Positions 3,201 to 39,988 of a DNA stretch of 64,000 bases are shown here, in pieces. A program made the position numbers and the translations under genes. The notes under the pieces are model-generated. The model worked only from the letters and a program-made list of their open reading frames with translations. It made no database searches and was not told the DNA's origin. Numbering within the stretch: position 1 is the stretch's first letter; each line of letters opens with the position of its first letter. The stretch comes from Lytechinus pictus. Lineage: Eukaryota. The stretch lies in contig NC_087249.1 in assembly GCF_037042905.1 (NCBI RefSeq), positions 6,572,001 through 6,636,000 on the forward strand. The letters are read 5' to 3'.

Positions 3201-6200
3201 CAAGAAGAAAATGAACACCTTTTGACAGGCCATTCCACCAAGTTATTTTAAAGCCAGTAAAGATCACTAATAGAGGTAAAATATCAGATCAATTCTCTAC
3301 TTATCCTTCCTGCAAAAAAAAAATATCCATCTTGCTTGTCCTTTTCTCTGGTTCCATGTTCTAGGTTTCTCTGACCTCATTCAGAACTACAATTATTGTC
3401 ATCTTGGTTTCAGATTTGATATATTTTGTTTTCTTTGGTAGTCAGTCACAATTTGAGCTACATTGTTTGTTTTTTGTGTGTTCCACCATAATTGTTTTTT
3501 TTTTGCCACAATGATTCTCTTACTGATACAGTACAAACTCTTTACAAGACTTCAGCTAAATTAACTTGGAGGGCCATGCAATTTTTTTTCCTAATTTGAA
3601 ATATTTTTGTTTTTTCATCTCCATCAATCTAACTATCTAATTCAACCCTCCTATTAAAGAACTGAATTTTGCCTGTTAGCTCCTTCATTGATGGACTTGT
3701 CCCCTTTTGCTGTTTCTTTGGGGTACTTGTCCCTTACAGACAACCAAATTTTCCCTTTAAGTTCCTTTGTTGGTGTTTTTAGCTTCCTCGATGATAAACT
3801 GGACAGGTCCCTTTTAGCTCCTACATTGATGGTCTTGTCACTTTGTCCCTTTTTACATCCTTCGTCGATGGACTTGTCCCTTTCAGTGTCTCGATCAATA
3901 GAATGACCTCTTACATGTATGCCCCTCCATGGTTGGACTTATCCCCTTTTGTCATTCTCTATATTTACCCATCCATTGGCTAGTTGGACTTGCCTCTTTC
4001 TTGCCTCGATGTCTCTTGTTCTTGACTGGAGCAGAAGGATACCCCTCCTTAATAGTCTCTGACAATTTCTCTGTTCTATCATTTTGGATTAACCTCTTTC
4101 TTGCCTTGATGCCTTTTCCTTGATCACAGCAGAAGAGTGCCCCTTTATAGTTCCTGGAAACTGCTTTGTTCTATCGATTTGGACTTACCTCTTTCTTGCC
4201 CTCATGCCTCTTGTCCTTGACTGGAGCAGAAGGATGCCCCTCTTTAGTTTCTGGTAATTCCTCAGTTCTAATGCCATCCTCCAGAAAGCTTGGATGACGA
4301 TTGCAGCCTTCCTCTGCTCGTCGTATATCCTTCTATCAAGATAACCACGCCAGTGTGCCTAAAAGATTAAGAAGATACATCAAAACTTGTATATAAAGAC
4401 TGCTCAAAGGAAGCCAGAAAATCAGTCTTTAACCCAAACTTACCTGGGGGGGGGTCCTTTTCACCCCCCTGGCCTTTTTTGTGATAAATCCGCAGTGTAA
4501 AATTTATTTTTTTTACCACACCGTTCGCTGACTTTTTACTTCCATTGAAGTCTGACATGACTTTTGAGACCAAATTTTTGAAACCTGGCTACGCACTTTA
4601 GAAATTACGCGACATGTGTGGCGTTATCATTTCACAGGTTTATTATTTCATGTCTCGCACATCCTGAGATACCAAGTTTAGGAAAATTGTTTAAATATGA
4701 AACAAAGGTTTGGCTTGCAATGATGATGATTTACTTTCCATTTGTTGTGCGGTGTGTGGTGATGATGTTGATGATGATGGTGATAATGATGATGATGATG
4801 TTGATAAAATTGATGATGANNNNNNNNNNNNNNNNNNNNNNNNNNNNNNNNNNNNNNNNNNNNNNNNNNNNNNNNNNNNNNNNNNNNNNNNNNNNNNNNN
4901 NNNNNNNNNNNNNNNNNNNNNNNNNNNNNNNNNNNNNNNNNNNNNNNNNNNNNNNNNNNNNNNNNAATATTGAGCCACATTTCTGTTAAAAACATTCAAA
5001 GGCGCAAGCTCATCCAATTAAGTTAATTACTATACATCTGCTGAAATAAGTGAGCTTTGAGACATACATGTAATCTGTAGTCCCTGATGGTGTATCATTA
5101 ACTAATACTGATTTCAACATCAATTTCAGTTGATGACACCCAAACCTGGTAGGTGTTATCTTCCTCCTCACCTGCAGTTTGATAATGGATTCCCTCGTCT
5201 CTAGGTAACGTCTCCTGGCCAGGATCCCTCGGTACCACCACTGGATCTTGCATATCCGCTGGAGCACATGGGCATGGAGCGCTTCCTGGAGCTTCACTCT
5301 CTCACTCTCTCTCAAGAAAACCTGGAGATGAAACAAAGTGTGAGGAACTAGATATTGGCTTCACAAATGAATCTGATATTACTTGGGAGGGATCATAGCT
5401 GTATGAAGGTTTGCATATTTCCAGAATCTGAGAATACAACCTCACTTGACTAAAAGTCCTAGGTATGATTTTACAATAAAAATCTTATTCCCAGGAAGAA
5501 GATCATATTCAAATAACTGTCCTGTACTTTCCTACACAGTATCACAAGGAATGCACAATTTGTATAAGGTTAAAATACATGACTGTAATTCATTTAATCA
5601 TTTAACTGCATGTACATACATGTACCATCACCATTATAATCATAATTATATTCATTGTCATAATTCCCCAGTCTCTGGGGATGAGGTCCATCCAGTGGAA
5701 ATTCCCTAGTCCTCAGAGATGATGCCAACCCACAGGAGTTGTCCAGTCCAGGGGAATGATGTCCACCAAGGGAAGTTCCCCAAGTCCCTGGGGATGATGT
5801 CCATCAGGGGGGGGGGGGGGGTGGGGAGCACCCCAGTCAAGGGGAATGAGGTCCACCACCGGAAGTTCTCCCTGTCACTGGGAATGATGTTTACTAAGAG
5901 GAGTTACCCCAGGCATCAGGGAAGATGTCCACCCAGGAAAGTTGTCACTAGTCCTTGGGGAAGTCTAGTCTACACTGGGAAGTTCCGCCAGTCCCTGGGG
6001 ATGTTGTCCTAGAGGCATCCATACTGAGGTGATGATGAGAATACTAACCTTTGATTTGCCAATCTGATAGTTGGTGTCATCCAGGTCCATCGATACAAGG
6101 AATGTCTTTATCTCTCTGGCTGAAGCCTTCATCTGCTTCGGTAGCAACACTTTGTACTTATGACAGAATTCCTACACACAAGAAGAAAAAAAACAATGAA

Positions 6201-9200
6201 AGCAAAGCAGATGAACTGTCAAGCCAAAGAGAGCATAACTGTGATGTCTAATGGGTATTAGGCAATTTATGCCATAATAAGCCTATTGAAATTTAAATAC
6301 ATGAATGTGACAACTAGTGCTGTTGTCGATAGGCCTCATATCGACATACATTGTACAAAGGATTTTCAATGTTTCTGACATGTCGACATGCACGCACCCA
6401 CATCGACATGTAAACATGAAATAAAAAGGGTCTAGCCTAAAGTCACGAGTGTAAAGCTTACCTGAAAAGTTAGAAGCATTTATCCACATTAATTGGCGCA
6501 ATTAAAAGTTTTATTTGGCTTAGCAGTGCATTAAATTAAAAAAGAATGCCTGCGAGCTGCGCGGCAGCAGAAATACGTCAGTGCGGGGCCCTAGCACGAC
6601 GATCATTTGATAGACCTCTATGCATTCTAGCGCGGTATAGCGCTAGCGAGCGTAGAATTCACCGTATCGTACCCATCTCTATTCACCGTGCTTGATAATA
6701 CGCTGCTCCTCGATGTATAACTTTTCACATAGACGTGAGCAGCAGCGAACACGTTTTTGTCAAAGTTGTGACCGCCGTAATTGAGCGCTTACTTCATTTC
6801 ACAAAGTCACAGAAAACTTACCTTCCTTCATTTGGAGATTGTTGCATTGATCGCCGCAGAAGTGGTACTGAAATTATCGATTGATTTTTATTATTTTTTA
6901 TTGTCAATTTGAGGAGCTTGCGTTACTTTGCAGCATATGTGTACCAGCGCATAATACGCAATGATCACTGTTGCAATTGGTGATTCTGAAATAGGCTCCG
7001 AGTGTTATTGCGCAATGCTTTCGAGACCGGATCGGATCTCCAGAATAAATGTGGATTAAATCAGTGATTTTGGAAGTAAATTCACTCTAGCTTAGTCAAA
7101 ATATGTTTTCCTGAACTGAGCCTGTAGTATAGATCTAGATCTAGTGTGGGGATATCACTCATGTCAAGGTGAATACATTTGACTGACAGAGTGTTATGTG
7201 CTACGATCGAATGATTGTTAGGAGCTAGGGCTAGGCTAAATTATGGTCCCCTTTTCATGTCGACATTGTCGATGTCGCGATCAATTTTTAAGCGACATGT
7301 CGACATAGATTTTTGTTCCCGACAACACAGATATCTGTACCATCACCTACTCTACTACCACAGGCCATCGCTGCCCAGTTTTCCGAAAAGGGGGAGTTAG
7401 TCTTGAAATGTACATTACAGATGATTACTAATAACTGTAAGAATAAATCAGGCTATCATTTCATTTCTAAAGAAACACTCAAATTTCTCGACAGGAAAGA
7501 ACTTGTTTAGAGTTACTTGGTAACATAATTATTGCGGTATGAATGTCATGAGAACTAAATTATTGCGTTACCATTTAATTGGGTTTGCTTTCCAACACTA
7601 CACTGCTGAGAATGATGCATTATGGGTTAGGAACCTGGCCAGATATGAGGACTTGAGGTGGCTCCTGGTTACTATTTGCTTTAAAATAGCTGCTTAAGTG
7701 GGTTTTTTTCTTGAAGGCTCAAAGACAGTGAACGTACCTCAAATTTGAGTCTGACGTTGTAGCCGGACTGCCTGATCCTGACCGTCTCCAGCATACCGGT
7801 GTAGCGTAGCTGCCTCATGATGAGCTCTTCGTCCAGACGACATGGCTCTTTCTGGGAGTTGGACTTGATGCACCGAACAAAGAAGGGATTGGCTTGGTTC
7901 AACGTATCCATCAACTTACTCAACGAAGACTGAGATGAGAGAGAAGATATTCATGGGAGGGTAATTATTAGTGAAAGACATACTATTACTGGTGAGTTGG
8001 CTCAGTTGGTAGAGCGTCCGTTTCAAGCCTTGGCCACATCAGATCAAAAGACGTTATTGGGGTTGCTGCTACTGTTTGGAGTTAAACAATCTAAGGGATG
8101 GAGCAACGTCGATCTGGCGCTGCGCAGTGTCTGCCGGGCCCAAAATTCACTGGGCAAAATGAATTTTCGAAGTGTTTCCATATCAAATTTCTATTTTGAA
8201 CAATTAATATTGATTTCAAAGACCAGAGTTACATCATTATCATGCCATGACTATGGTTGTTAGTTAATTCAATCTACAATCTACAATTTAACATCAGAAT
8301 TCAAGACATCTACACTAATGAGCCAACTGGGTTGGAGACTATTAAGGTGAAGCTGCCCAGGTCAAACTTTTTTTTTTGGTGGAGGGGGGGACTTACACAA
8401 TTATATTCAACTGAGGCAAAATTAGACTTAAAGATGTATATAACACATGCTTGTATATTCAGGGGGCCGTCTTACAAAGAGTTATGATTGATCCAATAAA
8501 TTGTATCTCTATGGAAATCCATCAGTGTCATAAATTTTTCTACAGGACATTTGCACAATGTTCTTTGTAAACAAAGAGAAGCACAGTGAATTTTTAAGAA
8601 AACAATTAATGCATCATAGATAGAAAATATTTTGACCAAACATGCATAATACATGTTGACGTTACTGGCCGTCCATACTTGTGATTGATCGGATCTATCG
8701 CAACTCTTTGTAAGACGGGGCCCTGGTCTGATGAAATACATCATCTACAGGCGATAATTCAATGGAAGGTTGACTTTGACAGAGTCTTCTGTATAAAAAA
8801 AAAATCAATTCAATTTACCTGGAACTGTGCACATACTGTCGGTGGATGTTTCTTGGATTTCCTACGATTTGGAGAGTATCGCCCAGCGATCTTCTTAACT
8901 GACTTCAGATCTCTTAGACTCTGCATCGAAGAAAAACAACAACAAAAGAAACCTTTCTAAACTATAAAGGGTGATAGACCATCATTGAAACACACATAAA
9001 AGAAATTGAGAATATAGGTATCGTCTTTGTTTGAAGACAGTGATGACTTAGACCTTGAACAGTGACATAAAGGGAAATCTGAATATCCAACTAAACAATT
9101 CACAATGAATCCCAAAGGTACTACATTTATAAATGAATCATGTAGCAAGTACACTAATGTTTGAACGATCATTCTACCTGGTGGGGGTTTCCTAAAGCTG

Positions 9201-12200
9201 TTCGTACATCTAAGTTAAAAATGACTTTAAGAACGACTGGTGATCCGTTCTTACGCACTAAATAATCACCAATGAACATTTAATGGTATCATTTACCACA
9301 AAAAGGATCACCAGTTGTTCTTGAAGTCACTCTTAACTTATGAACAGCTTTATGAAACACCCCCTGGACTATTTCCCTTTCAATTACTAATGAGATGTCG
9401 AATTATATCAAAAATTGGGGAGAGGTGGGCACTTTGGTAAAAGTGCGTTTCATAGGATTGTCAATGATTCTTAAAAAGGATGGGCATTTCTAAGTAAAGA
9501 GTTATCACTAGATATAAACACAATGCTGAAACCACTGGCAGAAATTATCCATGTTCTATCAGCATGTTAGATTTTTTCAAATTTCTTGGCTTTTTAGAGA
9601 TTATTTTAATTGGAAACTGAAAATAAGAAATCCAAAAGTAGACACAAGCAATCCAAATTCAAATATGAATTCTAGAATTTGGAACGTAAAATATGAAAAC
9701 TTGAATTTTGAATTCCAGAATATAGGACATGGAATAGGAAAAAAAATAATTGATTCAACATTCCTACATACATGTATCTATTCTATTGGCTAGTTAAAAC
9801 TGTAATATAAATGAACTGAATATTAAAGGTACATGTATCCTACAAATGAACTTAATATTTTGAAAATATCCACCCTCAATCATTATTCCTTCTTAATTGC
9901 TAAATTGATTTAGCTTACCTTTGAGGGCTGTACTTGAGCTCCACGGAATGATCGATTTCTTCTGCTCATTGGGAAAAAAATTGTAATTAAAGAGTGAATA
10001 ACCAAGTACAAATTGTGCATAGTAATTCATCAAAATATTGCTTCAATTCAGACAAATTATTTGTCTTCATATACATGTACACATTGATTACAGATCATTG
10101 TGCCACTATCCTTAGCAGATCTCTTTATAAGTTTATTTTAAAAAAAAAGACTTTTAAATCTGTGGGAGTCTTTTTTTTAGATAACTCACTGGAGGTCATA
10201 TAATGGCAATGGTTTTCAATTTGCAATCCCATGCATATTTTGTAATAAAAAATTGTTTGGGTTTTTCTCCTTGTCTTAAATTTTCAAGGATACCAAATGG
10301 TAATGCCAAAATAATCACATGTATTTCTGCAGGTTGCAGCCAGAAAATGTGTTTATATGTAACTATTAATATTGTACCAGTATTTAAAATTCTAGGCTTT
10401 AAATTCTTGTTAATCGTCTAAAGGCCAATAACAAGCAACCCCAAAACATTGAGAATCCCTAAAAAATTGGAAACTTTGTCAAATGACTGATAAAGTTTCT
10501 ACACATCATTGAGATAAAATTTAAAGTGTGTATTTCAAATCATATTCAGATTTTATTAGCAGAGCAACAGCAAATAAAGTTAAAAAGCTTTTTGGTAAAA
10601 ATTCGAATATTTTCTGCGGCAGGTGCAAAGAAGAAGTTAGTTCTTTATCAGGTGCAGGCTTTGTGGCAAGAATCATCAGCTCTGCTTGTTATGGCTTTCA
10701 ATTCTAAACCCTAAGTGCATGGAAATGTAAACGTGAAAGCTCCAAAATGAAATCGAATTTTCAACTTTATCTTTAATGATTCTAACATTGAAATTAATCT
10801 TTGTGTAATTCTTCACCTACATGTCGGGAATGAATGCATAGGTAAGACTAAGGTACATCAGGGGTGTGTCTCACAAAAAGTTTTAAATGGCTTAAAGTGA
10901 TACTTAAATGGTAATGATACACAGGAGTGAACATGATTTGACCATGATATGATGTGTAAAATGCCAAACACAACTTGAAATGTACATGTATGAGTGACTT
11001 GAAGTCACACTTTTTGTGAAACACTCCCCCACCAGGACAATGGTATGGCACTGATATTGTATGACTTGGAACAGCTACATGTATTCAAATGCATTATGGT
11101 TGTAGTCAAGATGCAGTAATCTACAACCTTGTGTGTGACATGTACATGTAAATGTAGGTTGCAAGACTACAGTACATTGCATTCCAGGACTTCAGGCACA
11201 GGGTCATTCCACTCAATATATTCATGATTTCTTCAAACAAGGTATTCATATGAGGGGAAAATTCTGGCATGCTATCACACGATATATAACAATTTTCATT
11301 CTACAAACACGTTTTGGACAAGGGAGAAGGATTAGAATTGTAATTCTTCATAACATGACTCTATCAAACAACCATAAAAATATATACATACATGTATACA
11401 GTATGTACAATGTATATGAAAAGATTAAGTTGACTGAATATCAAAGATACTGAAAAATGATATATTTTGAAACAACCCATTTGAGATAATTATTGAAATG
11501 TTTGAACAAGTTAAAATAAAATCCTTTAAAGTTATGTTTGTTATACATTATTTTCAACAATTATGAAATTATATACGAAAATGGGATATTTTGAACAAGT
11601 ATGGAAATGGAATGTTTCAACCATGGGCAAATGTACAATTTTTTTGTGTGAAATTTTTATAGCCAAAAGTATGTAAAGGTGATATAATGTTGATGTAAAT
11701 GCACAACATGAAGGGCAGTCAAGTTATGTCGGAGGAGAGAACAAGAAAGCTGGGAAGATTTAATTTTCTTTCATTGCCATGCTTATTTCAATGTGGTAGA
11801 AAGACTTTTGTCTCAGAAACAGATATAAAAACAAATATTTGCCTACTCCGTAAACCTTATTGGTAAATCATAACACCTCTGTGACTTGTGTAACTATTGC
11901 TGACTCATGCAATACGAAACTGGTAACAGATTTCCCATATTTGTAAAGATACAAATTTTTGAAAGGCTCATAACCCAGTTCCAGATTATTTTTTCTCAAC
12001 CTTTATACTTAATACCACCAATGTAATTTCATCTATTTGAGAAAAAGAATGAAGGCATGCTTTTACAGGTAAATTAATTTTCATGCTCTATAATTAATAA
12101 GACTGGCAAGAGTAGCAAAAAAATTCTTGTCAATACTATATTTTGTTGAAAGACAAACAAAAATATCTTTGGTGAAGTAAGCGTTTGCCTACTTAAGCTT

Positions 12201-15200
12201 CATTTGAGGATTTCATGCTGGTTTATTTAAGAATGACATGTATTTCCCCCTAGTCCAGCAGACCTTCACCCTTCAGTATACCAAACCTTTTCCCCTAGTG
12301 TTCAATCCTTTTTCCCCTTATATTCCAAACCTATCCCCCTAGAGAACTAACCCCCCCCCCCCCCCCCCGCTCCTTGTTTACCAGACCTTTCCCCTTAAGT
12401 GCACCAGAACTTTTCCTTTAAGGGTACCAGACCTTTCCCCAAGTGCACCAGACTGTTGCCCCCAGAACAGCAGACAGGGGGGGGGGGGGTTGTAAGAGAT
12501 ACCAATGACTGAAGTGAAGGACGTACTTGACCACTTTGGAGGCCCTTAGATATGTCTCCTGGTAGAGCAGTCTTGGCTTCGAACCCAGGCTCAGGCGAGA
12601 TGTAGGACTTAGCAACATTGGGCTGGTTAGTAGGGGGGATACTCCACGCGATGTCAGGCTGCAAGGCAGATGATAAGGAGGGTGGGGATGGGGTAACGCA
12701 GGGGGACGGAGGGGGGGGGCATGGCAGGCAGGCATGGTGACGACGATGAGGCAGCCAGTAGGGGGTGGGGTGGGGAATGGGTGGCAGGAGGGGGTGGGGT
12801 TGGTGATACAGAGAGAAGGTGGGGGAGGGGTGGGGGAGGGAGATGGTAAATATACGTTTTGAAACAATATCATTTCATGCCAGTCATGCAACTCAAACAC
12901 GTAAAGCCAGGGTGCGTCGTTGATAATGATACATAAATACACGGCCTATTCCAGTGCTGCTCAGTGGTATTTACTGGGTGCTGCGTTTGATATTTCATTT
13001 TCTTTGCTATCTAACTGTGCAGTGTTTTGTAGGCAGACATTTCAGGCATGTACTGTGACAAGCGGGTATGATTTTATTGTCGGAAACAAAAACAAAATAA
13101 CCGATTGTGCTGAGCATGCATTTTGAAGAGGTAACGCACCCTGCCTTCCATGTACAGATATACATGTACCGATATATTGAATAACAATTACTTTCTGACA
13201 TTGATATATCAGGTGATTGACTTACAAAATACTTGGATACATATACAAATTATCAGCATTTTCACACAACCATACACAGAAAAGATGCAAGAGAGAAAGG
13301 AACAGGAAAGTTAAAGCACAGGATATACATGTACATACATGTACATACACCTGTAGCTGTATATCGATGTTTGTATACATGTACATGTATGTATGCTTTA
13401 GGGATAAGGACTGATACATACAGATGTACGTGGAAATGAGTGTGTGGGACTGACCTCATTTGATTTATGCAAGTGTATAGTGAAGGGGTTGTAAACATAC
13501 AATAACTACGTCAGGGTTGCATAGGCCTATCTATGGTCTGTGATTGTGTGATTTTCAGGTACGATTTTCAGTATATGATATTTACAATGAGTTGTATTTT
13601 ACCATAATACCCTTAAAATATATATATATATATATTTAGAATCATGCCATAATTTTCCTGTAATAAAACATGCCTTTTTTGATATCCACTGCAGCAGGAA
13701 TAATTAGAAAATACATAAGATCTCTTTCCATGCAAAATAAATTGCTTCATTTCATTGGGTTATAAAACTCCTTTAAAACACAAAAACAAGTATGTGGGAC
13801 TAATCTCAATATCTTGCATAGCATAACGAAAATCTGGAAATTGATGCAAATCAAACACATTATTAAAGAAATCAGTGGATGCTGGTTGGGCAAAGGCATT
13901 AAACAATCTCACAACATGAAATTGGAAATTACACTTTCAAATTACATAATTCCTCAATCTAGGAGATTTTATCCTGGTTAATAGTTTGTCTGGGTTTTTT
14001 TTATAATAAGGGAGGATATATTTGCACATTCATTGTCAAGCAACACACGGGCAGTAAATGTCTGAGAGGTGTTTGTGAATATACAAGTTGATATATATAT
14101 ACATGTACAAGGAATGAGTGAGGGGTAGGATCGAGTGCATGCCTAGTCTCTTTCTCAACTCACTTGATGAGCGCCATTATGCGGTAACACCTAGAGGCTG
14201 TGTACAGGTTTCTGGGAAACAGAAACAAGTGACTGGGGGTTAGAGTCTACAATGTAAATCATCAATTTGGGGGGATATACATGTAAGCAGACCGATGAGT
14301 GCCTTCAAAGCGTGCGATGTTCAATCTTTCTCTGTTTCCGTAGGAACTATTGTACAATGTGTGGTAGTCTTCACACCATCAGAGCAATAATGTCCTTATA
14401 TAAAAAGATCTATAGGTGTAGTTATTTGTATGTGAAATTAAAGCAAATTAAGAGCAGTTATTAGCAATAAACATCATAAGAATGTTCTTTTTATCAGCGA
14501 CTAGAAACGTACATGTGCTCTGTTATTATTACATATTATCAATGTTATATGAATTGACCACATAAAAACTATTCATGTTTGGGGTTATAAATAGGCAATT
14601 TTACTCTGAATTTAGAATAGAATTAATCACTAATAATCATGTGCTGTTAGGCACGTCATAAAAAATCCCAATAGATTAAAAGACCGCCATTAAAAATTCA
14701 AATGTTTTTATTCTAAGCAACCTGAATTCAAAATACAAAAGGATTTCAATTATCAATGACGTTTTTAGTTGATATTAATATGTTTATGATTGCAAAAAGT
14801 CTTTAAGGGGACTAAGTAGGTGAAAATTGATAGTTGCAACTGATCTTGAATGAAGCCATTTTGGATTCCAGTTGTGCACGGTTAACATGGTGATCGATGA
14901 GTGATGTCTGTGAAGTACTTACATAGAAGCACAATGGTGCGGACATCTATCAACAGAGGGATTCAAATAATAAAAAAAAGAAGAGTTTCACAAAATTTAT
15001 TTTCAAAGGGGGTCATAAAGGAGGTCACTTTGAAGACACTGAGGTCATTAAAAAAAAAAAAAAAATCAATAATGACAACATGGACTGGACGACAACATTT
15101 TGGCAGCATTTGGTCTCACATCTACGCAGAGTTGTTTTGAGGAAAAACGGTATTGAACGTCAACGAATCATATTGGAAAGGAAAGACATTTTCAAAAATT

Positions 15201-18200
15201 GTGTAGGGAGCATATTTCTAAAAACCTAATTTGAGCACATCGTGTTGAGAGAGAAAAGAAAGGAAATAGACGAGAATCGAAACAACATTCACACATATTA
15301 TACACTTAACCCGACAGGAATCAATATCATCGAGAGTATTAGTACGAACACAAGAACAGTTTCATAACAATATTAACAGAATATGGATTTATCCAATAAT
15401 TTCATCACAAATATACCACTACCAATCTACAGTTTATAGCAAGCCCAAAAGGACAAAAACAGGGAAACCATAATAGTTTGATATTCAACCAAGGGCTGTA
15501 TAAATTTTTGGAAGGAATTTGGATAATCACAAATTTCAAATAACATCTCATGAACAAAATTACATGTATCCAAATTGACAAGGGGAGATTATAATAGGGG
15601 CTTAAAGGGGGAGACCACTCTGACAACAAAATTGCTCAGATAAAAATATAGTGAATTATTTGGTGAAAATGAGCAAATTCCAATTAAGATAAACTCACTA
15701 AGTTGTGATGAATCAATTTATCAACACTGTAGCAAAATGAGTAAGGCCCTCTCTAAAATTTCTCATTAATTTGAAATGGATTCTCAATCAAAAGCATTCT
15801 TCCATAAAGGGTCGAATACAAGATTTTTTATTTTTTTGCAGTTTCATAATTCATATTATTTCATTGAAATTTGCTTGATCTATGTGATCAAGTCTTGCCT
15901 AGTTATGGTATCGAATATGAGGGGAGACCTTTTGAAAATGTCACATTCTTTTTTAACACGCTAAACCCAATGCCAGAAATATCTCTGGTTAGGGTCTATG
16001 GAAAATATATTATTATAATCATGAAATCCAATTGTGCTCAACTAGTGTATTTTCATTCTTATTGATGACAACTAGAAACTATACTTTTTTTTATTTCATA
16101 TCAAAGTTCTTCTCCCTTCTTCTCATAAAAGCAAATTTGTAGCAGAGTGACCTTCCCCTACATAATCATGTATTAATGACATCATCTTTGAAATACAAAC
16201 AGTATCATCCGGGGCAAAAGGGTTTTCTATTGTTGAATCCAATCTATCACATTGATTATAATCATATAAGACAGAAAGACAGTATACTTGCTATTCATAA
16301 TTTGGTTCTGAAAGGAATAATGGAATGTTGCCTCATTACAAGCATTTAATATTTCATATAAAAGTACCTGAGAACGTTTTCGTCCCTTCCGTCAACGCTA
16401 AGACTGAGGTTTGGTGGCCGCTTCTTCCCTTTTAAACCTGAAAAAATAACATGCATTAAAGCAAAAATGGTGTGAAAAGTCAATCAAGTAAAAATGAGAA
16501 AAACAGTAGTTGCCTGGAAAGAGTCTACAGTGCTTCAGCAATGGACATGTTATTGTAAATGCATTCCGTTTAAAGAGCATTGGTAAACAATAGTAAATCA
16601 CATCTGCTAAAATGATAACTTGATCGTGTTATATTATTTCTGGGGGAAATACATGTATGAACAGTCAAGTTTTAAATAAAAGTTAATTAATGCAATCACG
16701 TGTTCATAAAGACACTAGTTTCTAACTGTTGAGCTAAGAAGAAATGAATATCAGTCTAAAACACTTCAAAACACAATAATGATCAGAATATTTACTGAAG
16801 CTCTCTATGCAGAACGCATCATACTCTATGATTATCACAAAAGAAGTGCATATCAAATACAGAAATATACACAATAAACAGAAAGAATGTGATCTATTTT
16901 GTTTATTAAACTGATCCATAATTATTGACTCACTTGCATCTTTACTGAGACTTGATCCTGCGAGCTTGAACGCACTCACTGATCTGAAAAATGCTCTTAA
17001 GATGGCCCATCTGAACACAGCTACTGGGTTCTTGCCCACAAGTTCTCCAACGAATGCCAGTCTACTGTTCTTCAACACAGACACAATGTCTATCCTCATC
17101 AGGTCAGTGTTCTTTTCTCTGAAATCCTATACAGGTCAAAGATCAAAGGTAACACCAGATATATTGATTGAAATCAAGGGTTTTAAGCTGGATATGACAG
17201 TTTGGAAATTATATTGAATTAAAAGCAGAATGAAGAATTTGCACATTCTATGGCAAAAAAAGTTGCTTTTAATGATTAAGAATAAAACTAACAATACATT
17301 CATCTAACATTACAAGATACCACCCTGCTATTGTAACTGCCTATCCTACACGGTGTCCAAAAAATGGTCTTTCATCGATTATCCAATTATACTAATGGAA
17401 AATTCTAGAATTCATACATATCTTCATTAGTTCACTACCTGTTCATGATAGGTCACACATACTTAAAATGTTTGCAAATGAAATTATATCTTTTCAAACT
17501 ATTCCTGTTTGAAATGATTCCAATTGATATATTTTGAAGACACTTCCCAAAGCAAGATCCACATTTATAGAACTTCCTGGCTTGAAATACTAAGTTTCAC
17601 TAAACCATTAAAGAATTTTTGTTACATGCAATAATTTGTGTACCCATAAAGAATAACAAACCTCTTAGGACATGAACCCCAAACCCATTAATTGTGATAC
17701 ATGGGGTAGAACCACAGCACCTACCTTGATGTTGTATTTGACCTTGCCAGCATAGTGTTGAATGATGAAAGCATGCTCCTGGATTGGTACTTGTTGGAAG
17801 TATTCATTGCCGGAATGCTCTTTCACAAACTTATTCAGTAGGTTGCTACCATCGGTGTCTTTGGCTGGGAAACTGGGCAAAAAGATATGCCAGGATATAG
17901 TATACAAATGTACCAGGCTTTGAGTAAGTATAGCGGGAATTCTTTGTCTCTCAGGAAAAATAGTAATTTTGCCAGTACAACCGAGGATGACTAATTCCCT
18001 CCATACTTTCGAAATAAAGGCCTGGTATATCCTACATTTAATAAGGTGGAAAAATAGATCTTGATAATCTAATTCTTGTGCTCGTAGTTCATCCTTTTTT
18101 AATCTGAACCAAAATTAGACAACGCATCGCACTGACTGACCTACTTTTCCTGAAGCCACACGCTCACTGTGGAACACGGATTTGTGCCTGCGCCGTCACG

Positions 18201-36200: not shown

Positions 36201-39200
36201 AGATGAGATGCTTTACTGTACAAGTAGCCTTGGAGAAAATAAGTGAATTTGAGTCCATTTTCTCAAAATAGTCGCACAGTGACGACAGCAATGCTACCTG
36301 AGTATGCACAACAATATCTCCACCAGGAATAGCCACTTCTCTCTACCCTATTTCGGGCAATTCCTACCCTCATCTCATAATAAAACACTTCTTATTGGAT
36401 GATAATACCGATCAAATAATTTGTTTGTGTCTTAGCCAGAGTCCCATTCTCGAAAGAATATTTTGTTCGCAATTTTCTGATAAATTAGGGATTGGCAGTG
36501 TTTGCCAGTAGAGAGGAACATTTATCACAGCATAAAAACTTTAAAAGCCAGGGAGAACTGACTTATGTTTTATTGCATGCCGTAAGCCAATCCAACAAAA
36601 GGATATTGATAAATTGGGCAGAAATTCAGGACATTCTTCCAATTTAAATAATTGACGAATGCCAATAACGGCCGCATTAATGTGAACTGCCAGCCCGGAT
36701 CCCTAATTAATTGAATACTCCCGTTATAAATATGTCAACTTCGAGGTAAAAGTACATGTACATAATGTAAATACCAGCTCATGCATGTATTGTACAAGCA
36801 TGACATTCACATTGCTTTTAACATGATTGAATAGACAATGAAATGATGAGGAAGAATATGCATGTTTATTTTTTTAAAAGGTTGCTATAAAAACATAAAA
36901 ACAAGTACCAAATATAAACCAAAACATCACTATTTCAATATTATGTCAAGTCAATTTCAATTTTAATGAGAATCTATCACTTCAATTGCCAATGATGACA
37001 GGCCCTACAGTTATCCATCGGTAAGAAAATCTATGATATTGAAAACACAAGTTTTATAAGATCAATCGTTAATCTTGCAAGTCAACAACTTTTTCAATAC
37101 CTATGCAGCTGACCAGAGAATGTGATATTCTTGATTTTGAGTAAATTCATTTTTGTCACAGTACTATTGTAATTTCTATAATTTGCCAAAATTAGTTCTT
37201 AAGAAAATAATGATTCACCAGATATCATACTTGCTTTCATAAAACCCTTCCTCTCAAATCAAGCTGGTGGACATGTACATGTATCAAACTAGTAAGTACT
37301 ATGCTGTGAGGCATCATGGTCTAGTGGTTATGACTCTCTTTCAATCTCAGGGATATGGGTTCGATTCCCAGCCATGGCGTGTTTTCCTTCAGCAAGAAAT
37401 TTATCCACATTGTGCTGCACTCAACCCAGGTGAGGTGAATGGGTATCCGGTAGGAAGAAATTCCTTGAATGCTCGAGTACCTACATTATATAGGCAGCGC
37501 AGCTTCATGCAAATCCCAGGTAATATTATCGCTTTGTATCCTCAGGCAAAAAGCACTTTATACATGTAAATCCAGCTATTATCATTATTATTATAGAAAA
37601 GAGAATACCTATTAAAATACATTTCTACCATGCATGTTCTATATCATTATAAAAATCCAATCATCAAATAGTTCCCAGAGAGCAATAATATTGAGTGATT
37701 ACCCATAATTCCCTATTCTAATAGGGGATCAGGAGTGCATCATTTATCATTTCCAGGATAGGGGGTACAGACAATGAAATAAACTGTTTATGTATGAGTC
37801 ACCAACATAAATGTTCCCTCCCGATCCATTAACTCGAGCTGTGTTCATACATTTTTTTTTACTCTATCTTTTCTATTGAAGTTTGGTTTGGTTTAGTTTG
37901 GTTTTATTTACCGTATAAAAATCACAATAAAATACATTTCACAAGATATTAGATTAAAGTGAAATCACTAGCACTAGACTAGCATATTAAGCATACTCGT
38001 TATCTTGAATATTTATAGAACACCACCCGACATCGATGAATTATGGTTATTAAATATTCATTTTAAAAATCACAGTATATTCCAGTGAATGACTGCATCT
38101 GTCTTTCCCCTGAATATAGGAATCATAAATTACTTTGTTTGTGCCCGTTGAGTGATGAATAATTATTTTTGTAAACTTTTCTGATGTTCTTCACACAAAT
38201 CTTACTGAAATATGATTTAAATATTTCTTTTAAATGTTACAATTCTGGGAAGCAAAAAATCAAAAGCTTAAATTTAACGCTATATGAATACATATTGCTC
38301 TTCCAGTGTATGTTTACTTTGTATACTGCCTTTAAAAACTTGTGTTTTGATGGTCAAAAGAGTACTGTCACAGAGGTCGTTATTTCACTAGTTTCACGAT
38401 TGTAAAAAATGTTGATAAATCAAGAGAGTTAATTATGTATTGCGCAAACCCAGGTTTGCTTTGGTATATGCAATACCATTTACATGCTATTCAAGCTAGG
38501 CCTAATTTTAAAAAAGAGCCCTACTTGCACATGTTCCATAACCCAATGTCAATCCCTAACTCCAGCTCATGGGAATGGGGTTTCTTGAATTTCAAGATAA
38601 ATCTCAATTGAGTTAATTGGGCTGGGGACCTTTTCATCAACATATTTGTCTGAGAAGTTGTCAGACCCGACATATCTTGTTTGGCTGAGAGGCACTTTTA
38701 CTATGGAACTGTCAGATAAAACTGGACTTGTCAGATAAAACATCCATCGAGTAATTTCATGAAATGCTCCCCTGATCCTAAGAATCTTGCATTGAGCAAA
38801 TTGGCGCTGGGATCGGCCTATATGCTAGAAGACATGAAATATTCATATAGGGCACAATGCTTCTAAGCGCTTGATTTAATTACCTCGGCTTTAGCACAGC
38901 TACCCCGATCGGACGCTCAAGCATTCAAGGAATTTCTTCCTACTGGGTACCCATTTACTACAGCGGGTGAAGAGTGGCAAATGCAGATAAACACCCTTGC
39001 CATAGGACAAGAGTGCTGCGGTGGGATTCAAACCCCAGACCTTGAGGTTCAAAGTCAGGAGACTTATCCACTGAGCCACATTTACCTGCCCTTAGATTTC
39101 AATCATTCACAACACAATATAAAGGTAATGAGTAATTTGGTATACCTCAAGCACTGGGCCTGCTCCTAAAAGAGTCTGTTCTACACCACTGGCAAATCCT

Positions 39201-39988
39201 TTCTGACTCAGTGCTGTTAGATGGTGTATCAACAATGTAGTACTTTCTGTCTTCCCTGATCCACTCTCTCCTGATATCACAATACACTGATTCTGTTTCT
39301 CCTGGAGCATCGTATGAAACGCAGCATCCGCAATTGCAAAGATGTGCGGGGGAAGCTCCCCAAACCTGTGGTTCTGATACAAATTGACATACTTTGGGTT
39401 GTAGATAGGGAAGAACTTGAAAGGGTTCACTGCTATAAGTATTGATCCAACATATGTGTAAATCTTGCCCTTGCGAAATCTGGCCGATAAGTTGTCCAGG
39501 AGTGTCTTTTCGTTGAGATCAGGCAGTTTGCATAGGTCATGGCAGTCACCGGATGCTGAGGGTTGCGGGAAATACCCGCTCACAAAGGAGTCTATGCTCT
39601 TCATGTCAGACATGTCTGGGAGTGCTCCTGGCGTCTCGTTTATGCCACGTAAAAAGAAGCGGTAGTTCGTCTGAAAGGTGCCCGAATCGGTGGAGTCACC
39701 ACCTCTGCTGTCCACTATCTTTGGCCAGAGTAATTGCACTTTGACGGGACACTCCACCAGGTCTAGCCGACGCTCCTTGCAGCTCTGTCCTGAGTCTTGG
39801 CAAACCTCTGACAGACAGTATTCCTCGGGGTCGGAAAGGGCAAGCTTGCAGCAGAGGGCCTCCAGAAGGTCTTTGGTACTGGTCTGCTTGGTGGCTTGGA
39901 TGACAACGTAATGCCGATCGGGGTCAACGGTACCAGGGTGAACCCTCACAGCATAGACGGTGTCGTCCACCCCAACACCATCCGCCAT
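17..39988 (-). CDS. MYO9: Unconventional myosin IX (MYO9A/B-like), 5' part; spliced CDS of 19 exons, continuing past the window start
   Basis: The spliced exons listed below give one open frame with an RA domain, [25 protein letters not shown], the myosin-IX motifs RNALAK and [11 protein letters not shown], a long loop-2 insert, [26 protein letters not shown] and 4 IQ motifs. All introns are GT-AG with matching phases. Confidence 0.96.
770..1571. mobile_element. Helentron-associated (HINE-like) non-autonomous element with an internal tandem array
   Basis: Left hairpin GTGGTTCACGAACCAC plus a sub-terminal IR (GTCTCCCCTG / CAGGCGAGAC); about four 130-175 bp TGACCTTTGACC-rich units; 3' stem-loop GTCTC...GAGAC present twice. 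Confidence 0.6.
3984..4270 (-). repeat. Three tandem copies (95-100 bp) of the exon-18 3' end and its donor
   Basis: GGCAAGAAAGAG followed by GTAAGT (4188), GTTAAT (4093) and GCAAGT (3993); CTTCTGCT is shared by all copies. Confidence 0.9.
4189..4358 (-). CDS. MYO9: MYO9 exon 18 (170 nt), IQ2-IQ4: [10 protein letters not shown]...IQAFWRM...[12 protein letters not shown]
   Basis: ttttag|GCA ... AG|GTAAGT. Confidence 0.93.
4719..4819 (+). repeat. Imperfect (GAT)n microsatellite abutting the assembly gap
   Basis: gatgatgttgatgatgatggtgataatgatgatgatg. Confidence 0.9.
4820..4966. other. Assembly gap (N run)
   Basis: 147 N bases. Confidence 1.
5172..5321 (-). CDS. MYO9: MYO9 exon 17 (150 nt): VFLRESE...[12 protein letters not shown] (IQ1)...IKLQ
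   Basis: ctccag|GTT ... CAG|GTGAG. Confidence 0.95.
5665..6015 (+). repeat. Degenerate minisatellite, about 40-bp unit (CCCCAGTCCCTGGGGATGATGTCCACC..GGAAGTT)
   Basis: Roughly 8 recognisable units. Confidence 0.8.
6049..6171 (-). CDS. MYO9: MYO9 exon 16 (123 nt), converter: [12 protein letters not shown]...YQIGKSK
   Basis: gtgtag|GAA ... AAG|GTTAGT. Confidence 0.95.
6316..7330. mobile_element. Putative non-autonomous DNA transposon with CGACAT-rich subterminal repeats
   Basis: Ends TGTTGTCG / CGACAACA; many TCGACAT/ATGTCGA motifs at both ends; CpG-rich interior against an AT-rich background. Confidence 0.55.
7738..7929 (-). CDS. MYO9: MYO9 exon 15 (192 nt): [24 protein letters not shown]...GYNVRLKFE
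   Basis: tctcag|TCT ... GAG|GTACG. Confidence 0.97.
7995..8215 (+). mobile_element. SINE-like repeat with a degenerate tRNA head; related copy on the opposite strand near 21830-21950
   Basis: A-box TGGCTCAGTTGGTAGAGCG; AAGGGATGGAGCAACGTCGATCTGGCGCTG closely matches the reverse complement of 21899-21929. Confidence 0.5.
8463..8722. mobile_element. Harbinger-like MITE, family A, copy 1
   Basis: TIR GGCCGTCTTACAAAGAGTT..GATTGATCC; CAG/CTG flanks; homologous to 59820-60099 and 63487-63758. Confidence 0.85.
8819..8920 (-). CDS. MYO9: MYO9 exon 14 (102 nt): [34 protein letters not shown]
   Basis: gatgcag|AGT ... CAG|GTAAAT; the KKxPPTVxAQFQ motif ends loop 2. Confidence 0.93.
9181..9363. mobile_element. 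Harbinger-like MITE, family B
   Basis: TIR GGGTTTCCTAAAGCTGTTCGTA / TATGAACAGCTTTATGAAACACCC; CTG on both sides. Confidence 0.8.
9919..9961 (-). CDS. MYO9: MYO9 exon 13 (43 nt): [15 protein letters not shown]
   Basis: gagcag|A ... AAG|GTAAGC; phase 2 to 0; resembles the basic KNKNF-type segment of vertebrate Myo9 loop 2. Confidence 0.88.
10861..11032. mobile_element. Harbinger-like MITE (degenerate)
   Basis: GGGGTGTGTCTCACAAAAAG ... CTTTTTGTGAAACACTCCCC. Confidence 0.65.
12245..12465 (+). repeat. Degenerate short tandem repeat (CCAGACCTTTCCCC-type, about 21 bp)
   Basis: Repeated ACCAGACCTTTCCCC / CCAAACCTTTTCCCC motifs. Confidence 0.6.
12527..12658 (-). CDS. MYO9: MYO9 exon 12 (132 nt), loop 2: [44 protein letters not shown]
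   Basis: gccttgcag|C ... AA|GTACGT; phase 2-2; preceded by a long C-rich tract. Confidence 0.8.
14164..14211 (-). CDS. Candidate 48-nt loop-2 cassette exon ([16 protein letters not shown]), phase 2-2
   Basis: CTAAC branch point, tgtttctgtttcccag acceptor, AA|GTGAGT donor, open frame. Confidence 0.6.
14293..14346 (-). CDS. Candidate 54-nt loop-2 cassette exon ([18 protein letters not shown]), phase 2-2
   Basis: caatag|TTCC...CG|GTCTGC; open and symmetric, but the donor is weak. Confidence 0.35.
14923..14946 (-). CDS. Candidate 24-nt loop-2 microexon (RCPHHCAS), phase 2-2
   Basis: ctctgttgatag|ATGTCCGCACCATTGTGCTTCTAT|GTAAGT; frame-preserving, no stop. Confidence 0.5.
16368..16437 (-). CDS. 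MYO9: MYO9 exon 11 (70 nt), loop 2: [23 protein letters not shown]
   Basis: ttttcag|GT ... AG|GTAC; phase 1 to 2 is needed to join exon 10 to the downstream exons. Confidence 0.88.
16934..17126 (-). CDS. MYO9: MYO9 exon 10 (193 nt): [11 protein letters not shown]...[19 protein letters not shown]; start of the loop-2 insertion
   Basis: tatag|GAT ... A|GTGAGT; the FRWAILR segment is characteristic of the myosin-IX loop-2 calmodulin-binding site. Confidence 0.95.
17725..17872 (-). CDS. MYO9: MYO9 exon 9 (148 nt): [15 protein letters not shown]...[15 protein letters not shown]
   Basis: cccag|T ... AAG|GTAGG; HYAGKV motif. Confidence 0.95.
17909..18442. mobile_element. Non-coding element with an internal region complementary to its joined ends (Crypton/DIRS-like architecture), copy 1
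   Basis: Internal GGCCTGGTATATCCTACA (from 18019) is the reverse complement of right end TGTAGGATATA plus left end TACCAGGC; contains a perfect 46-bp palindrome at 18270-18315. Confidence 0.55.
18918..19039 (-). CDS. MYO9: MYO9 exon 8 (122 nt): [40 protein letters not shown]
   Basis: ttgcag|GAG ... AA|GTAAGT. Confidence 0.95.
19676..19810 (-). CDS. MYO9: MYO9 exon 7 (135 nt), switch II: [45 protein letters not shown]
   Basis: ttgcag|GGT ... CAG|GTGAG. Confidence 0.97.
20658..20774 (-). CDS. MYO9: MYO9 exon 6 (117 nt): [39 protein letters not shown]
   Basis: ttttcag|GCC ... CAG|GTATG. Confidence 0.95.
21416..21629 (-). CDS. MYO9: MYO9 exon 5 (214 nt): [16 protein letters not shown]...VQYRMAE
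   Basis: gatag|A ... GAG|GTACG; LSAVLHIGN motif. Confidence 0.95.
22461..22561 (-). CDS. MYO9: MYO9 exon 4 (101 nt): [34 protein letters not shown]
   Basis: ttttcag|AGC ... AG|GTAAG; phase 0 to 2. Confidence 0.94.
22989..23145. mobile_element. Harbinger-like MITE (CCAATC-centred, related to 42002-42146)
   Basis: GGCCCCATTGCATTAAAG ... TTTTATGCAAGGGGG; CAG/CTG flanks; shared CAGCCAATCA.AATCAAGG core. Confidence 0.7.
23239..23977 (+). repeat. Minisatellite, 26-27 bp unit GACTTGGTAGTCAATGGCT(T)AACTTCT, about 28 copies
   Basis: Head-to-tail units visible directly, with no spacers. Confidence 0.97.
24306..24781. mobile_element. MITE with 20-bp TIRs, TA-flanked
   Basis: GGTGGTTTCAAACCGCCTCG / CGAGGCGGTCTGAAACCACC; internal TTTCAGACCGCCAAAATACC repeats. 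Confidence 0.85.
25826..26042 (+). repeat. Purine-rich (GGA/GAA) low-complexity tract
   Basis: About 200 bp almost entirely G/A. Confidence 0.9.
26470..26632 (-). CDS. MYO9: MYO9 exon 3 (163 nt): [30 protein letters not shown]...YLNQ
   Basis: tccag|T ... CAG|GTGAG; YLLEKSR and ERNYHVFY motifs. Confidence 0.96.
28978..29103. mobile_element. Internally deleted TTAA-flanked (T2/Kolobok-like) MITE
   Basis: TTAA|AGGGGAAGTCCACC ... GGTGGATTTCCCCT|TTAA. Confidence 0.8.
32730..33339. mobile_element. TTAA-flanked (T2/Kolobok-like) MITE with long TIRs, copy 1
   Basis: TTAA|AGGACAAGTCCACC ... GGTGGACTTGACCT|TTAA; arms of about 200 bp pair; homologous to 44923-45518. Confidence 0.9.
34010..34417. mobile_element. 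Harbinger-like MITE; related fragment at about 48180-48360
   Basis: GGGCCAGTATTCA / TGAATACCAGCCC termini; TTAAG-rich interior. Confidence 0.65.
35165..35259 (-). CDS. MYO9: MYO9 exon 2 (95 nt), switch I: [32 protein letters not shown]
   Basis: caccag|GCA ... GG|GTAA; conserved myosin motif; too short for the ORF track. Confidence 0.96.
37308..37594 (+). mobile_element. tRNA-derived SINE
   Basis: A box TGGTCTAGTGG, B box GGTTCGATTCC, central CACTCAACCCAGGTG..AATGGGTA, (ATT)n tail; fragments also at about 53963-54050 (+) and 57325-57425 (-). Confidence 0.85.
38625..38771. mobile_element. Harbinger-like MITE (degenerate)
   Basis: CTG|GGGACCTTTTCATCAA ... TTCATGAAATGCTCCC|CTG. Confidence 0.65.
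38855..39079 (-). mobile_element. tRNA-derived SINE, related to 37308-37594, opposite orientation
   Basis: Reverse strand GTGGCTCAGTGGATAAG..GGTTTGAATCCC; shares AATGGGTA..GTAGGAAGAAATTCCTTGAATGCT. Confidence 0.85.
39146..39988 (-). CDS. MYO9: MYO9 coding exon 1 (843 nt): RA domain + motor start to P-loop (MADGVGVDD...[12 protein letters not shown]...GAGPVLE)
   Basis: ATG in CAACCATGG context; acceptor tgcag at 40010-40011 (exon starts 40009); donor GAG|GTATA, phase 0. Confidence 0.95.

Follow-up and report, generated by a model that had tools for sequence, protein, structure and literature searches.

In nonmuscle myosin II, short frame-preserving loop exons, namely the B1 (loop 1) and B2 (loop 2) inserts of NMIIB and the C1 and C2 inserts of NMIIC, alter actin-activated behavior or regulation, and some of them are neuron-enriched microexons. 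Here, we analyze a window of 64,000 nucleotides from the sea urchin Lytechinus pictus (contig NC_087249.1, positions 6,572,001 to 6,636,000 of the forward strand; all coordinates below are counted from the first letter of this window), which carries a class IX myosin (Myo9) gene on its minus strand that runs past the low-coordinate end of the window. We consider it likely that three genuine phase 2-2 alternative exons of 132, 48, and 24 nt swap the middle of the loop-2 insertion that serves as the actin tether of this myosin, and that two further blocks of 54 and 51 nt in the same intron are products of chance. The parallel to nonmuscle myosin II lies in the use of short frame-preserving alternative exons in a surface loop of the motor; however, loop 2 of nonmuscle myosin II is short, whereas the urchin exons lie in the class IX insertion of approximately 100–150 residues, and the urchin exons replace one another, while those of nonmuscle myosin II are simply inserted.

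The loop-2 insertion of C. elegans Myo IX is basic and works as an electrostatic actin tether (PMC3887004). The urchin insertion is the same long basic element as that of C. elegans Myo IX and rat Myo9b, with an isoelectric point (pI) of 11.3–11.8, and it keeps the amphipathic helix at the N-terminal end of the insertion, which is conserved and to which calmodulin binding has been mapped in class IX myosins (PMC3887004). Published work on this class has dealt with single isoforms and with whole-insertion deletions, whereas the urchin gene offers alternative middle pieces, and our literature search found no paper on alternative splicing inside the Myo9 loop-2 insertion. We note that the transcripts are not new, as the isoforms are already in RefSeq for L. 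pictus, and the RefSeq (Gnomon) models of echinoid myosin-IX contain exactly the 132, 48, and 24+48 variants of the window; the gain is therefore one of interpretation and evolutionary depth and not of transcript discovery. What we did not find described, including in these automated models, is the connection with the loop-2 tether, the alternating use of the exons, and the conservation of a microexon as deep as the crinoids. The 24- and 48-nt exons also resemble the conserved animal microexons (≤51 nt) in preserving the frame, in encoding part of a surface loop, and in the conservation of their flank and silent sites; an SRRM4-type signal was not found, as TGC is absent from the 22 nt that precede the acceptors of the 24- and 48-nt exons.

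Alternative exons between exon 11 and exon 13

Four sequencing runs were examined over positions 11300–17299, among them runs X1 and X15, which come from the species of the window and from separate studies, and run X23, which comes from a sister species. In run X15, exon 11 is joined both to the 132-nt exon (joint 16368/12658, depth 58) and to the 48-nt exon (joint 16368/14211, depth 20.6), each time with CT..AC ends, corresponding to GT..AG on the gene strand, such that both inclusion and bypass of these two exons are observed in this run. The junction between exon 11 and the 132-nt exon recurs in run X1 (depth 36.8) and in run X23 (2 reads), and that between exon 11 and the 48-nt exon in one raw read of run X23. 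On the downstream side, the loose end at 12527 reads into exon 13 sequence, and a 6-kb contig from run X1 links exon 10, exon 11, and the 132-nt exon and continues into the start of exon 13, while the run X15 contig runs on past 14164, its loose end there being the initial 26 bases of exon 13. The latter contig thus joins exon 11, the 48-nt exon, and exon 13, and therefore this isoform exists in L. pictus, where it accounts for approximately a quarter of the junction depth in run X15. The 48-nt form was not seen in run X1, and this difference between the two runs is the sole hint of tissue or stage regulation of the exon. Inclusion junctions for the 24-, 54-, and 51-nt blocks were not seen in any of the four runs.

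These junctions also bear on an earlier reading of the locus made from the letters alone (the sequence-only reading), which had placed an exon 12 between exons 11 and 13 and had proposed that several small blocks between exons 11 and 13 could be spliced in. This "exon 12" is the 132-nt block itself, which had also been counted among the small blocks. The same reading had named exclusive exon 11–12–13 junctions, together with a lack of conservation, as the outcome that would speak against it; what we find is junctions from exon 11 through the 48-nt exon to exon 13, and conserved exons.

Three L. pictus RefSeq proteins contain the spliced loop-2 translations of the window as exact substrings, namely XP_063955777 (X1) with the 132-nt exon, XP_063955778 (X2) with the 24- and 48-nt exons, and XP_054756598 (a second X2 record, from an earlier annotation) with the 48-nt exon only. 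The isoforms of L. variegatus (X1–X6) comprise the same three forms, the 24-nt exon being present in X5. In S. purpuratus, isoforms X1, X3, X5, and X6 carry the 132-nt-type peptide, which is replaced by the 48-nt peptide in isoform X2, and isoform X4 has no cassette, the 132-nt exon being left out of both; older models of this species carry CAHHCAS, the 24-nt type, followed by the 48-nt peptide, and the 24-nt exon is likewise found in models of D. antillarum and D. setosum. Judged by the camarodont urchin models, the 132-nt exon serves as an alternative to the 48-nt exon, which is used either by itself or together with the 24-nt exon.

The arrangement that first drew attention to this intron is a different matter. 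All five blocks (24, 54, 48, 51, and 132 nt, Table 1) do lie on the minus strand with AG before and GT after, have lengths that are multiples of 3, and are stop-free when their first base completes a split codon (phase 2), just as the sequence-only reading had it; the donors GTAAGT, GTGAGT, and GTCAGT are present, as is the CTAAC ahead of the 48-nt block, and a boundary and frame check places the end of exon 11 and the start of exon 13 in phase 2. By itself, however, this generic frame-preserving AG..GT pattern carries no weight and shows no excess over chance. Approximately 300 phase-matched, stop-free AG..GT blocks occur per phase in a space of approximately 8 kb, the opposite strand yields comparable numbers, and 91 equivalent blocks lie within the span of the flagged cluster; dinucleotide shuffles gave 236 ± 26. 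The 6.4-kb intron that separates exons 11 and 13 contains 236 such blocks, and the pattern taken on its own is thus not significant. When a splice-signal filter was applied (a donor matching at least 5 of the 6 positions of GTRAGT, and at least 60% pyrimidines upstream), 9 of the 236 intron blocks passed, including those of 24, 48, and 132 nt, and the 54- and 51-nt blocks failed. The proposal that the blocks are alternative exons thus holds for the 24-, 48-, and 132-nt blocks, on the strength of isoforms and conservation and, for the latter two, also of junctions, and is unsupported for the other two. The intron stretch had further been described as free of miniature inverted-repeat transposable elements (MITEs); five weak inverted repeats were found in it, none of them MITE-like.

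Table 1. Positions in the window of the exons, pseudo-exons, and intronic elements around the loop-2 insertion of the L. pictus Myo9 gene.
Feature	Position	Strand	Properties	Basis
Constitutive exon 10	16934..17126	-	End of upper 50K and start of loop-2 insertion, including the conserved helix	tblastn, contig joint, frame check
Constitutive exon 11, 70 nt	16368..16437	-	Ends in phase 2; upstream partner in all alternative junctions	Joints to 12658 and 14211
24-nt alternative microexon	14923..14946	-	Phase 2-2, acceptor TAG, donor GTAAGT, peptide CPHHCAS	
54-nt block, unsupported pseudo-exon	14293..14346	-	Donor GTCTGC (3/6), 55% pyrimidines upstream	
Conserved intron flank of 48-nt exon	14212..14261	-	CTAAC branch-point candidate	blastn island vs Diadema, 14261-14154
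48-nt alternative microexon	14164..14211	-	Phase 2-2, acceptor CCCAG, donor GTGAGT, 15-residue peptide	
51-nt block, unsupported pseudo-exon	13455..13505	-	Weak splice signals	
C-rich pyrimidine tract	12659..12850	-	Approximately 190 nt, 50% C, directly upstream of the 132-nt acceptor	Composition comparison
132-nt alternative exon	12527..12658	-	Phase 2-2; Ser/Pro/Leu-rich, three S/T-P sites, then a basic helix-like end	
Constitutive exon 13, 43 nt	9919..9961	-	Phase 2 at the start and 0 at the end	Its start equals the consensus of the loose ends at 12527 and 14164
Constitutive exon 14	8819..8920	-	Basic C-terminal end of loop-2 insertion, to AQFQ	34/34 residues as in Diadema

Conservation and the middle of the actin tether

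The locus was compared with those of L. variegatus (where intron background identity is 90.5%), Diadema setosum, and the crinoid Antedon. From exon 10 to exon 14, the only islands that blastn returns against Diadema are constitutive exons 10, 13, and 14 and the alternative exons of 132 and 48 nt, the latter extended by 50 nt of upstream intron; tblastn additionally recovers exon 11 and the peptide CVHHCAS, in the correct order. The exons of 24, 48, and 132 nt are conserved together with their splice sites in both L. variegatus and Diadema, and Antedon has a 48-like exon and a long exon.

The constraint is strongest on the 48-nt exon, which is identical to its L. variegatus counterpart at 48/48 positions and, between Lytechinus and Diadema, at 45/48 bases and 15/15 residues, all three changes being silent. 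Silent changes affect 3/15 of its codons, compared to 28/48 in exons 13 and 14 taken together (Fisher p = 0.016), which served as the reference for this test as they too are 100% identical to Diadema in protein sequence (14/14 residues in the case of the exon 13 peptide). A stretch of approximately 24 nt containing the CTAAC upstream of the exon is near-identical in three urchins, and the comparison with Diadema shows higher conservation for the exon and the intron before it than for the neighboring constitutive exons. Taken together, the identity of the residues, the constraint on silent sites, and the conserved upstream intron fit what would mark a regulated, sequence-specific alternative exon. 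Isoform X4 of the crinoid Antedon mediterranea carries SLYTATRCYTWLKQM where the long segment would otherwise stand, and since the order of the locus is the same (exon 10, exon 11, a microexon encoding LYTATRCY..., the long exon, exon 13, and exon 14), the Antedon microexon is positionally orthologous to the 48-nt exon.

The 24-nt exon is identical to L. variegatus over 24/24 positions, and over 54/54 with its flanks. In Diadema, the AG, the GTAAGT donor, and the frame are all kept, and the changes comprise 3 silent ones and a single Pro/Val replacement; across urchins, the peptide takes the form C-x-H-H-C-A-S (CPHHCAS, CAHHCAS, CVHHCAS), with invariant Cys and His residues and a variable second position.

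In the case of the 132-nt exon, 129/132 positions are identical to L. variegatus (97.7%), and residue identity to Diadema is approximately 75%. The region is single-copy in the genome, and a repeat-derived origin of the exon is for this reason ruled out. The C-rich tract before its acceptor stands out, as the regions upstream of other exons here contain 14–23% C, compared to 50% in the tract; it is the same in L. variegatus, and the tract in Diadema is shorter, C-rich, and shares the CCTGCCTGCC motif, while the crinoid locus has no C-rich tract upstream of the long exon. Judging from its composition, this tract may be a regulatory platform that binds poly-C or polypyrimidine-tract proteins. 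Downstream of the exon, at 12230–12500, a C13 run and a G18 run lie 110 nt apart as an inverted repeat and enclose approximately four tandem copies of a G-run-rich unit of approximately 24 nt; the array is also found in L. variegatus, and raw reads with homopolymer loose ends pile up over this region. Looping-out of the 132-nt exon in the RNA, by pairing of the upstream C-rich tract with the downstream G-runs, was considered and rejected: the minimum-free-energy fold does pair them, but not specifically, with a z-score of +1.9 and with 98 of 100 shuffles folding at least as well.

With regard to a possible origin as tandem-duplicated mutually exclusive exons, the 48- and 132-nt exons differ in length, and their peptides have in common only an L-Y start and a C-terminal basic helix-like pattern, with the same phase and the same junction to KRNRSF. 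The site that a basic amphipathic stretch fills in mollusc, amphioxus, and vertebrate Myo9 is taken here by the 48-nt peptide or by the end of the 132-nt one. Among lobster Myo9 isoforms there is no variation in loop 2. When the 24+48 loop region was used as the query of a word-indexed protein search, three echinoid clusters were the only matches, a result that is uninformative on other phyla as the cluster representatives hide isoforms. We also observed that approximately 30 acidic residues midway along loop 2 set some vertebrate Myo9b-like representatives (P0034, P0069) apart from others (P0039, P0041) that lack them, which could be a species difference or alternative splicing.

Taking these comparisons into account, the change in the protein would arise as follows. 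Either the 132-nt piece or the 48-nt piece, the latter with or without the 24-nt piece, would be spliced between exon 11 and exon 13, and since these alternatives are joined directly to both exons, the cell chooses the peptide that precedes the invariant basic tail beginning with KRNRSF. Measured from VAVFRW to AQFQ, the insertion comprises 146 residues with a net charge of +25 in the 132 isoform, 118 residues and +23 in the 48 isoform, 126 residues and +23 in the 24+48 isoform, and 102 residues and +20 in the isoform with no cassette. The sequence-only reading had suggested that combinatorial splicing could tune the length and charge of the tether, and arithmetically this is borne out by the above values, though the perfect conservation of the 48-nt exon points elsewhere, in that it favors a specific motif over bulk charge.

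We infer that what the swap would exchange is a specific motif within the actin tether, with a role in interaction or in regulation, beyond the length and charge of the tether. The 132-nt exon contributes three S/T-P sites, and the microexons three Cys and two His residues; the long form would then be open to regulation by phosphorylation at these predicted sites, and the short form would be compact and Cys/His-bearing. The alternative that survives best, although we regard it as unlikely, is that the exons tune only the bulk length and the net positive charge of an unstructured electrostatic tether in which the exact sequence is irrelevant. Such a tether has a precedent in the basic insertion of C. 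elegans Myo IX (PMC3887004), the isoforms do span 102–146 residues and +20 to +25, and the low confidence with which the region is modeled is as expected for disorder. However, bulk tuning does not explain why all 15 residues of the 48-nt exon are kept between Lytechinus and Diadema, with extra constraint on its silent sites and partial retention in the crinoid, nor why the Cys and His residues of the 24-nt exon are invariant while its second residue varies, and the microexons contribute little charge (0 and +2).

A more specific version of the motif exchange would make the 24+48 combination an ancient Cys/His module, in which the C-x-H-H-C motif, 11 residues, and an invariant Cys on a predicted helix form a metal-binding or redox switch in the tether. 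We hold this to be doubtful, and decidedly so. The predicted helix derives from AlphaFold2, which, for the 24+48 loop segment with a 12-sequence alignment, places a helix over the residues encoded by the 48-nt exon at a predicted local distance difference test (pLDDT) score of approximately 40–45 (mean over the model 46.8), and it is to be taken as a hint only.

Returning to the exchange of tether middles by three genuine exons, a number of observations weigh against it. No read, contig, or junction for the 24-nt exon was found in the four runs, and this exon rests on automated RefSeq models together with conservation. The RNA nature of runs X1 and X15 is a guess, for which contigs that skip introns at GT-AG borders argue. 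In the Diadema models, the 132-nt segment stands by itself or is joined with the other two in one product (24+48+132), and the latter means either that mutual exclusion is not universal or that the models are composites. The 48-nt peptide resembles the end of the 132-nt peptide only weakly, none of the alternative exons is particularly basic (net charges of 0, +2, and +5), and the structure model, with the mean pLDDT given above, is poor.

The 54- and 51-nt blocks and the less probable alternatives

The 54-nt block matches L. variegatus at 50/54 positions, which is background level, with a 6-nt indel at the acceptor and a frame that is still open, and in run X15 it shows only an intronic or pre-mRNA-level depth of approximately 4. 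The 51-nt block matches at 44/51 positions with a 3-nt gap, its first in-frame codon in L. variegatus is TAA, and its 5′ end (13500–13505) has no coverage in run X15. A joint at 12499/13375 and the depth over 13376–13499 in the same run were set aside as spurious, as the ends are noncanonical and the signal adjoins a low-complexity repeat. Conservation of exon and splice sites is absent for both blocks: neither peptide has a counterpart in the D. setosum locus by tblastn or blastn, and neither occurs in any of approximately 20 RefSeq isoforms from six echinoderm species. On these sequence comparisons, the 54- and 51-nt blocks are chance open AG..GT blocks.

It is accordingly quite improbable that all five blocks are freely combined cassette exons, with the 54- and 51-nt blocks being rare or lineage-specific. 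Each block keeps the frame between AG/GT borders, the 54-nt block is open in L. variegatus, and the sampling of RNA is shallow, all of which such a scheme could draw upon; yet the TAA in the L. variegatus 51-nt block, identities at or below the intron background for both blocks, the missing Diadema and RefSeq counterparts, and weak splice signals in an intron that offers 236 equivalent blocks by chance all count against it. The opposite proposal, that the short isoforms (48 and 24+48) are functionless splicing noise and that the 132-nt form alone matters, we regard as very improbable indeed. The 132-nt form is the major one in runs X1 and X15 and in most RefSeq isoforms, but noise would not be expected to make up approximately a quarter of the junction depth in run X15, nor to leave the 48-nt exon and its upstream intron more conserved than adjacent constitutive exons and kept in a crinoid. 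Finally, that all five blocks are chance pseudo-exons is next to impossible, since, common as the pattern is on both strands (approximately 300 blocks per phase), RefSeq isoforms and conservation refute it for the 24-, 48-, and 132-nt blocks, as do spliced contigs for the 48- and 132-nt blocks.

Gene context and implications

Coding exons were placed by tblastn with S. purpuratus myosin-IXAa and with the L. pictus Myo9 proteins. Exon 1 (39146–39988, minus strand) translates into an RA-like extension joined to the beginning of the myosin motor, and its top match among 1.84 billion representatives is S. purpuratus myosin-IXAa (95% identity, aligned over 1–281). The C1/RhoGAP tail falls beyond the window, and these domains were read from the products of the orthologous genes, which contain PF00788 RA, PF00063 Myosin_head, IQ, PF00130 C1, and PF00620 RhoGAP. 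The RA-like extension fused to the motor and the long basic loop-2 insertion, with the length and pI ranges given above by isoform, are both as found in Myo9.

Exons 10 and 11 are connected by a joint at 16435/16932 ("cut +2") in spliced contigs of both run X1 and run X15. In addition, a run X15 contig (15838–16397) passes the exon 11 donor and extends approximately 530 nt into the intron at a depth of 30, compared to 3–8 elsewhere in the introns; it ends at an A-rich tract with AATAAA, and the frame stops after 7 codons. Either an intronic polyadenylation site or internal priming by oligo-dT could account for this read-through. One old model from S. purpuratus (P0158) has 23 extra hydrophobic residues between exons 13 and 14 that no other isoform has, which are probably a retained intron or a model artifact. 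Further downstream in the gene, at 3981–4358 on the minus strand, two neighboring open stretches encode similar IQ-type peptides with a common ending, which, from their sequence, may represent a local duplication in the neck region and possibly alternative exons; an assembly gap (N run, 4820–4965) lies just upstream of this pair.

Loop 2 is the element that keeps single-headed class IX myosins on actin, and in this gene a conserved choice is made just before its invariant basic tail, between a 43-residue Ser/Pro-rich segment and a 15–23-residue Cys/His-bearing segment. If the Cys/His module were real, echinoderms would have had two differently regulated Myo9 tethers from one gene since the common ancestor of crinoids and echinoids. 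Prior biochemistry has been performed with one isoform or with full deletion of the insertion, and the natural loop-2 variants of the urchin gene would provide a means to test the role of the middle of the tether.

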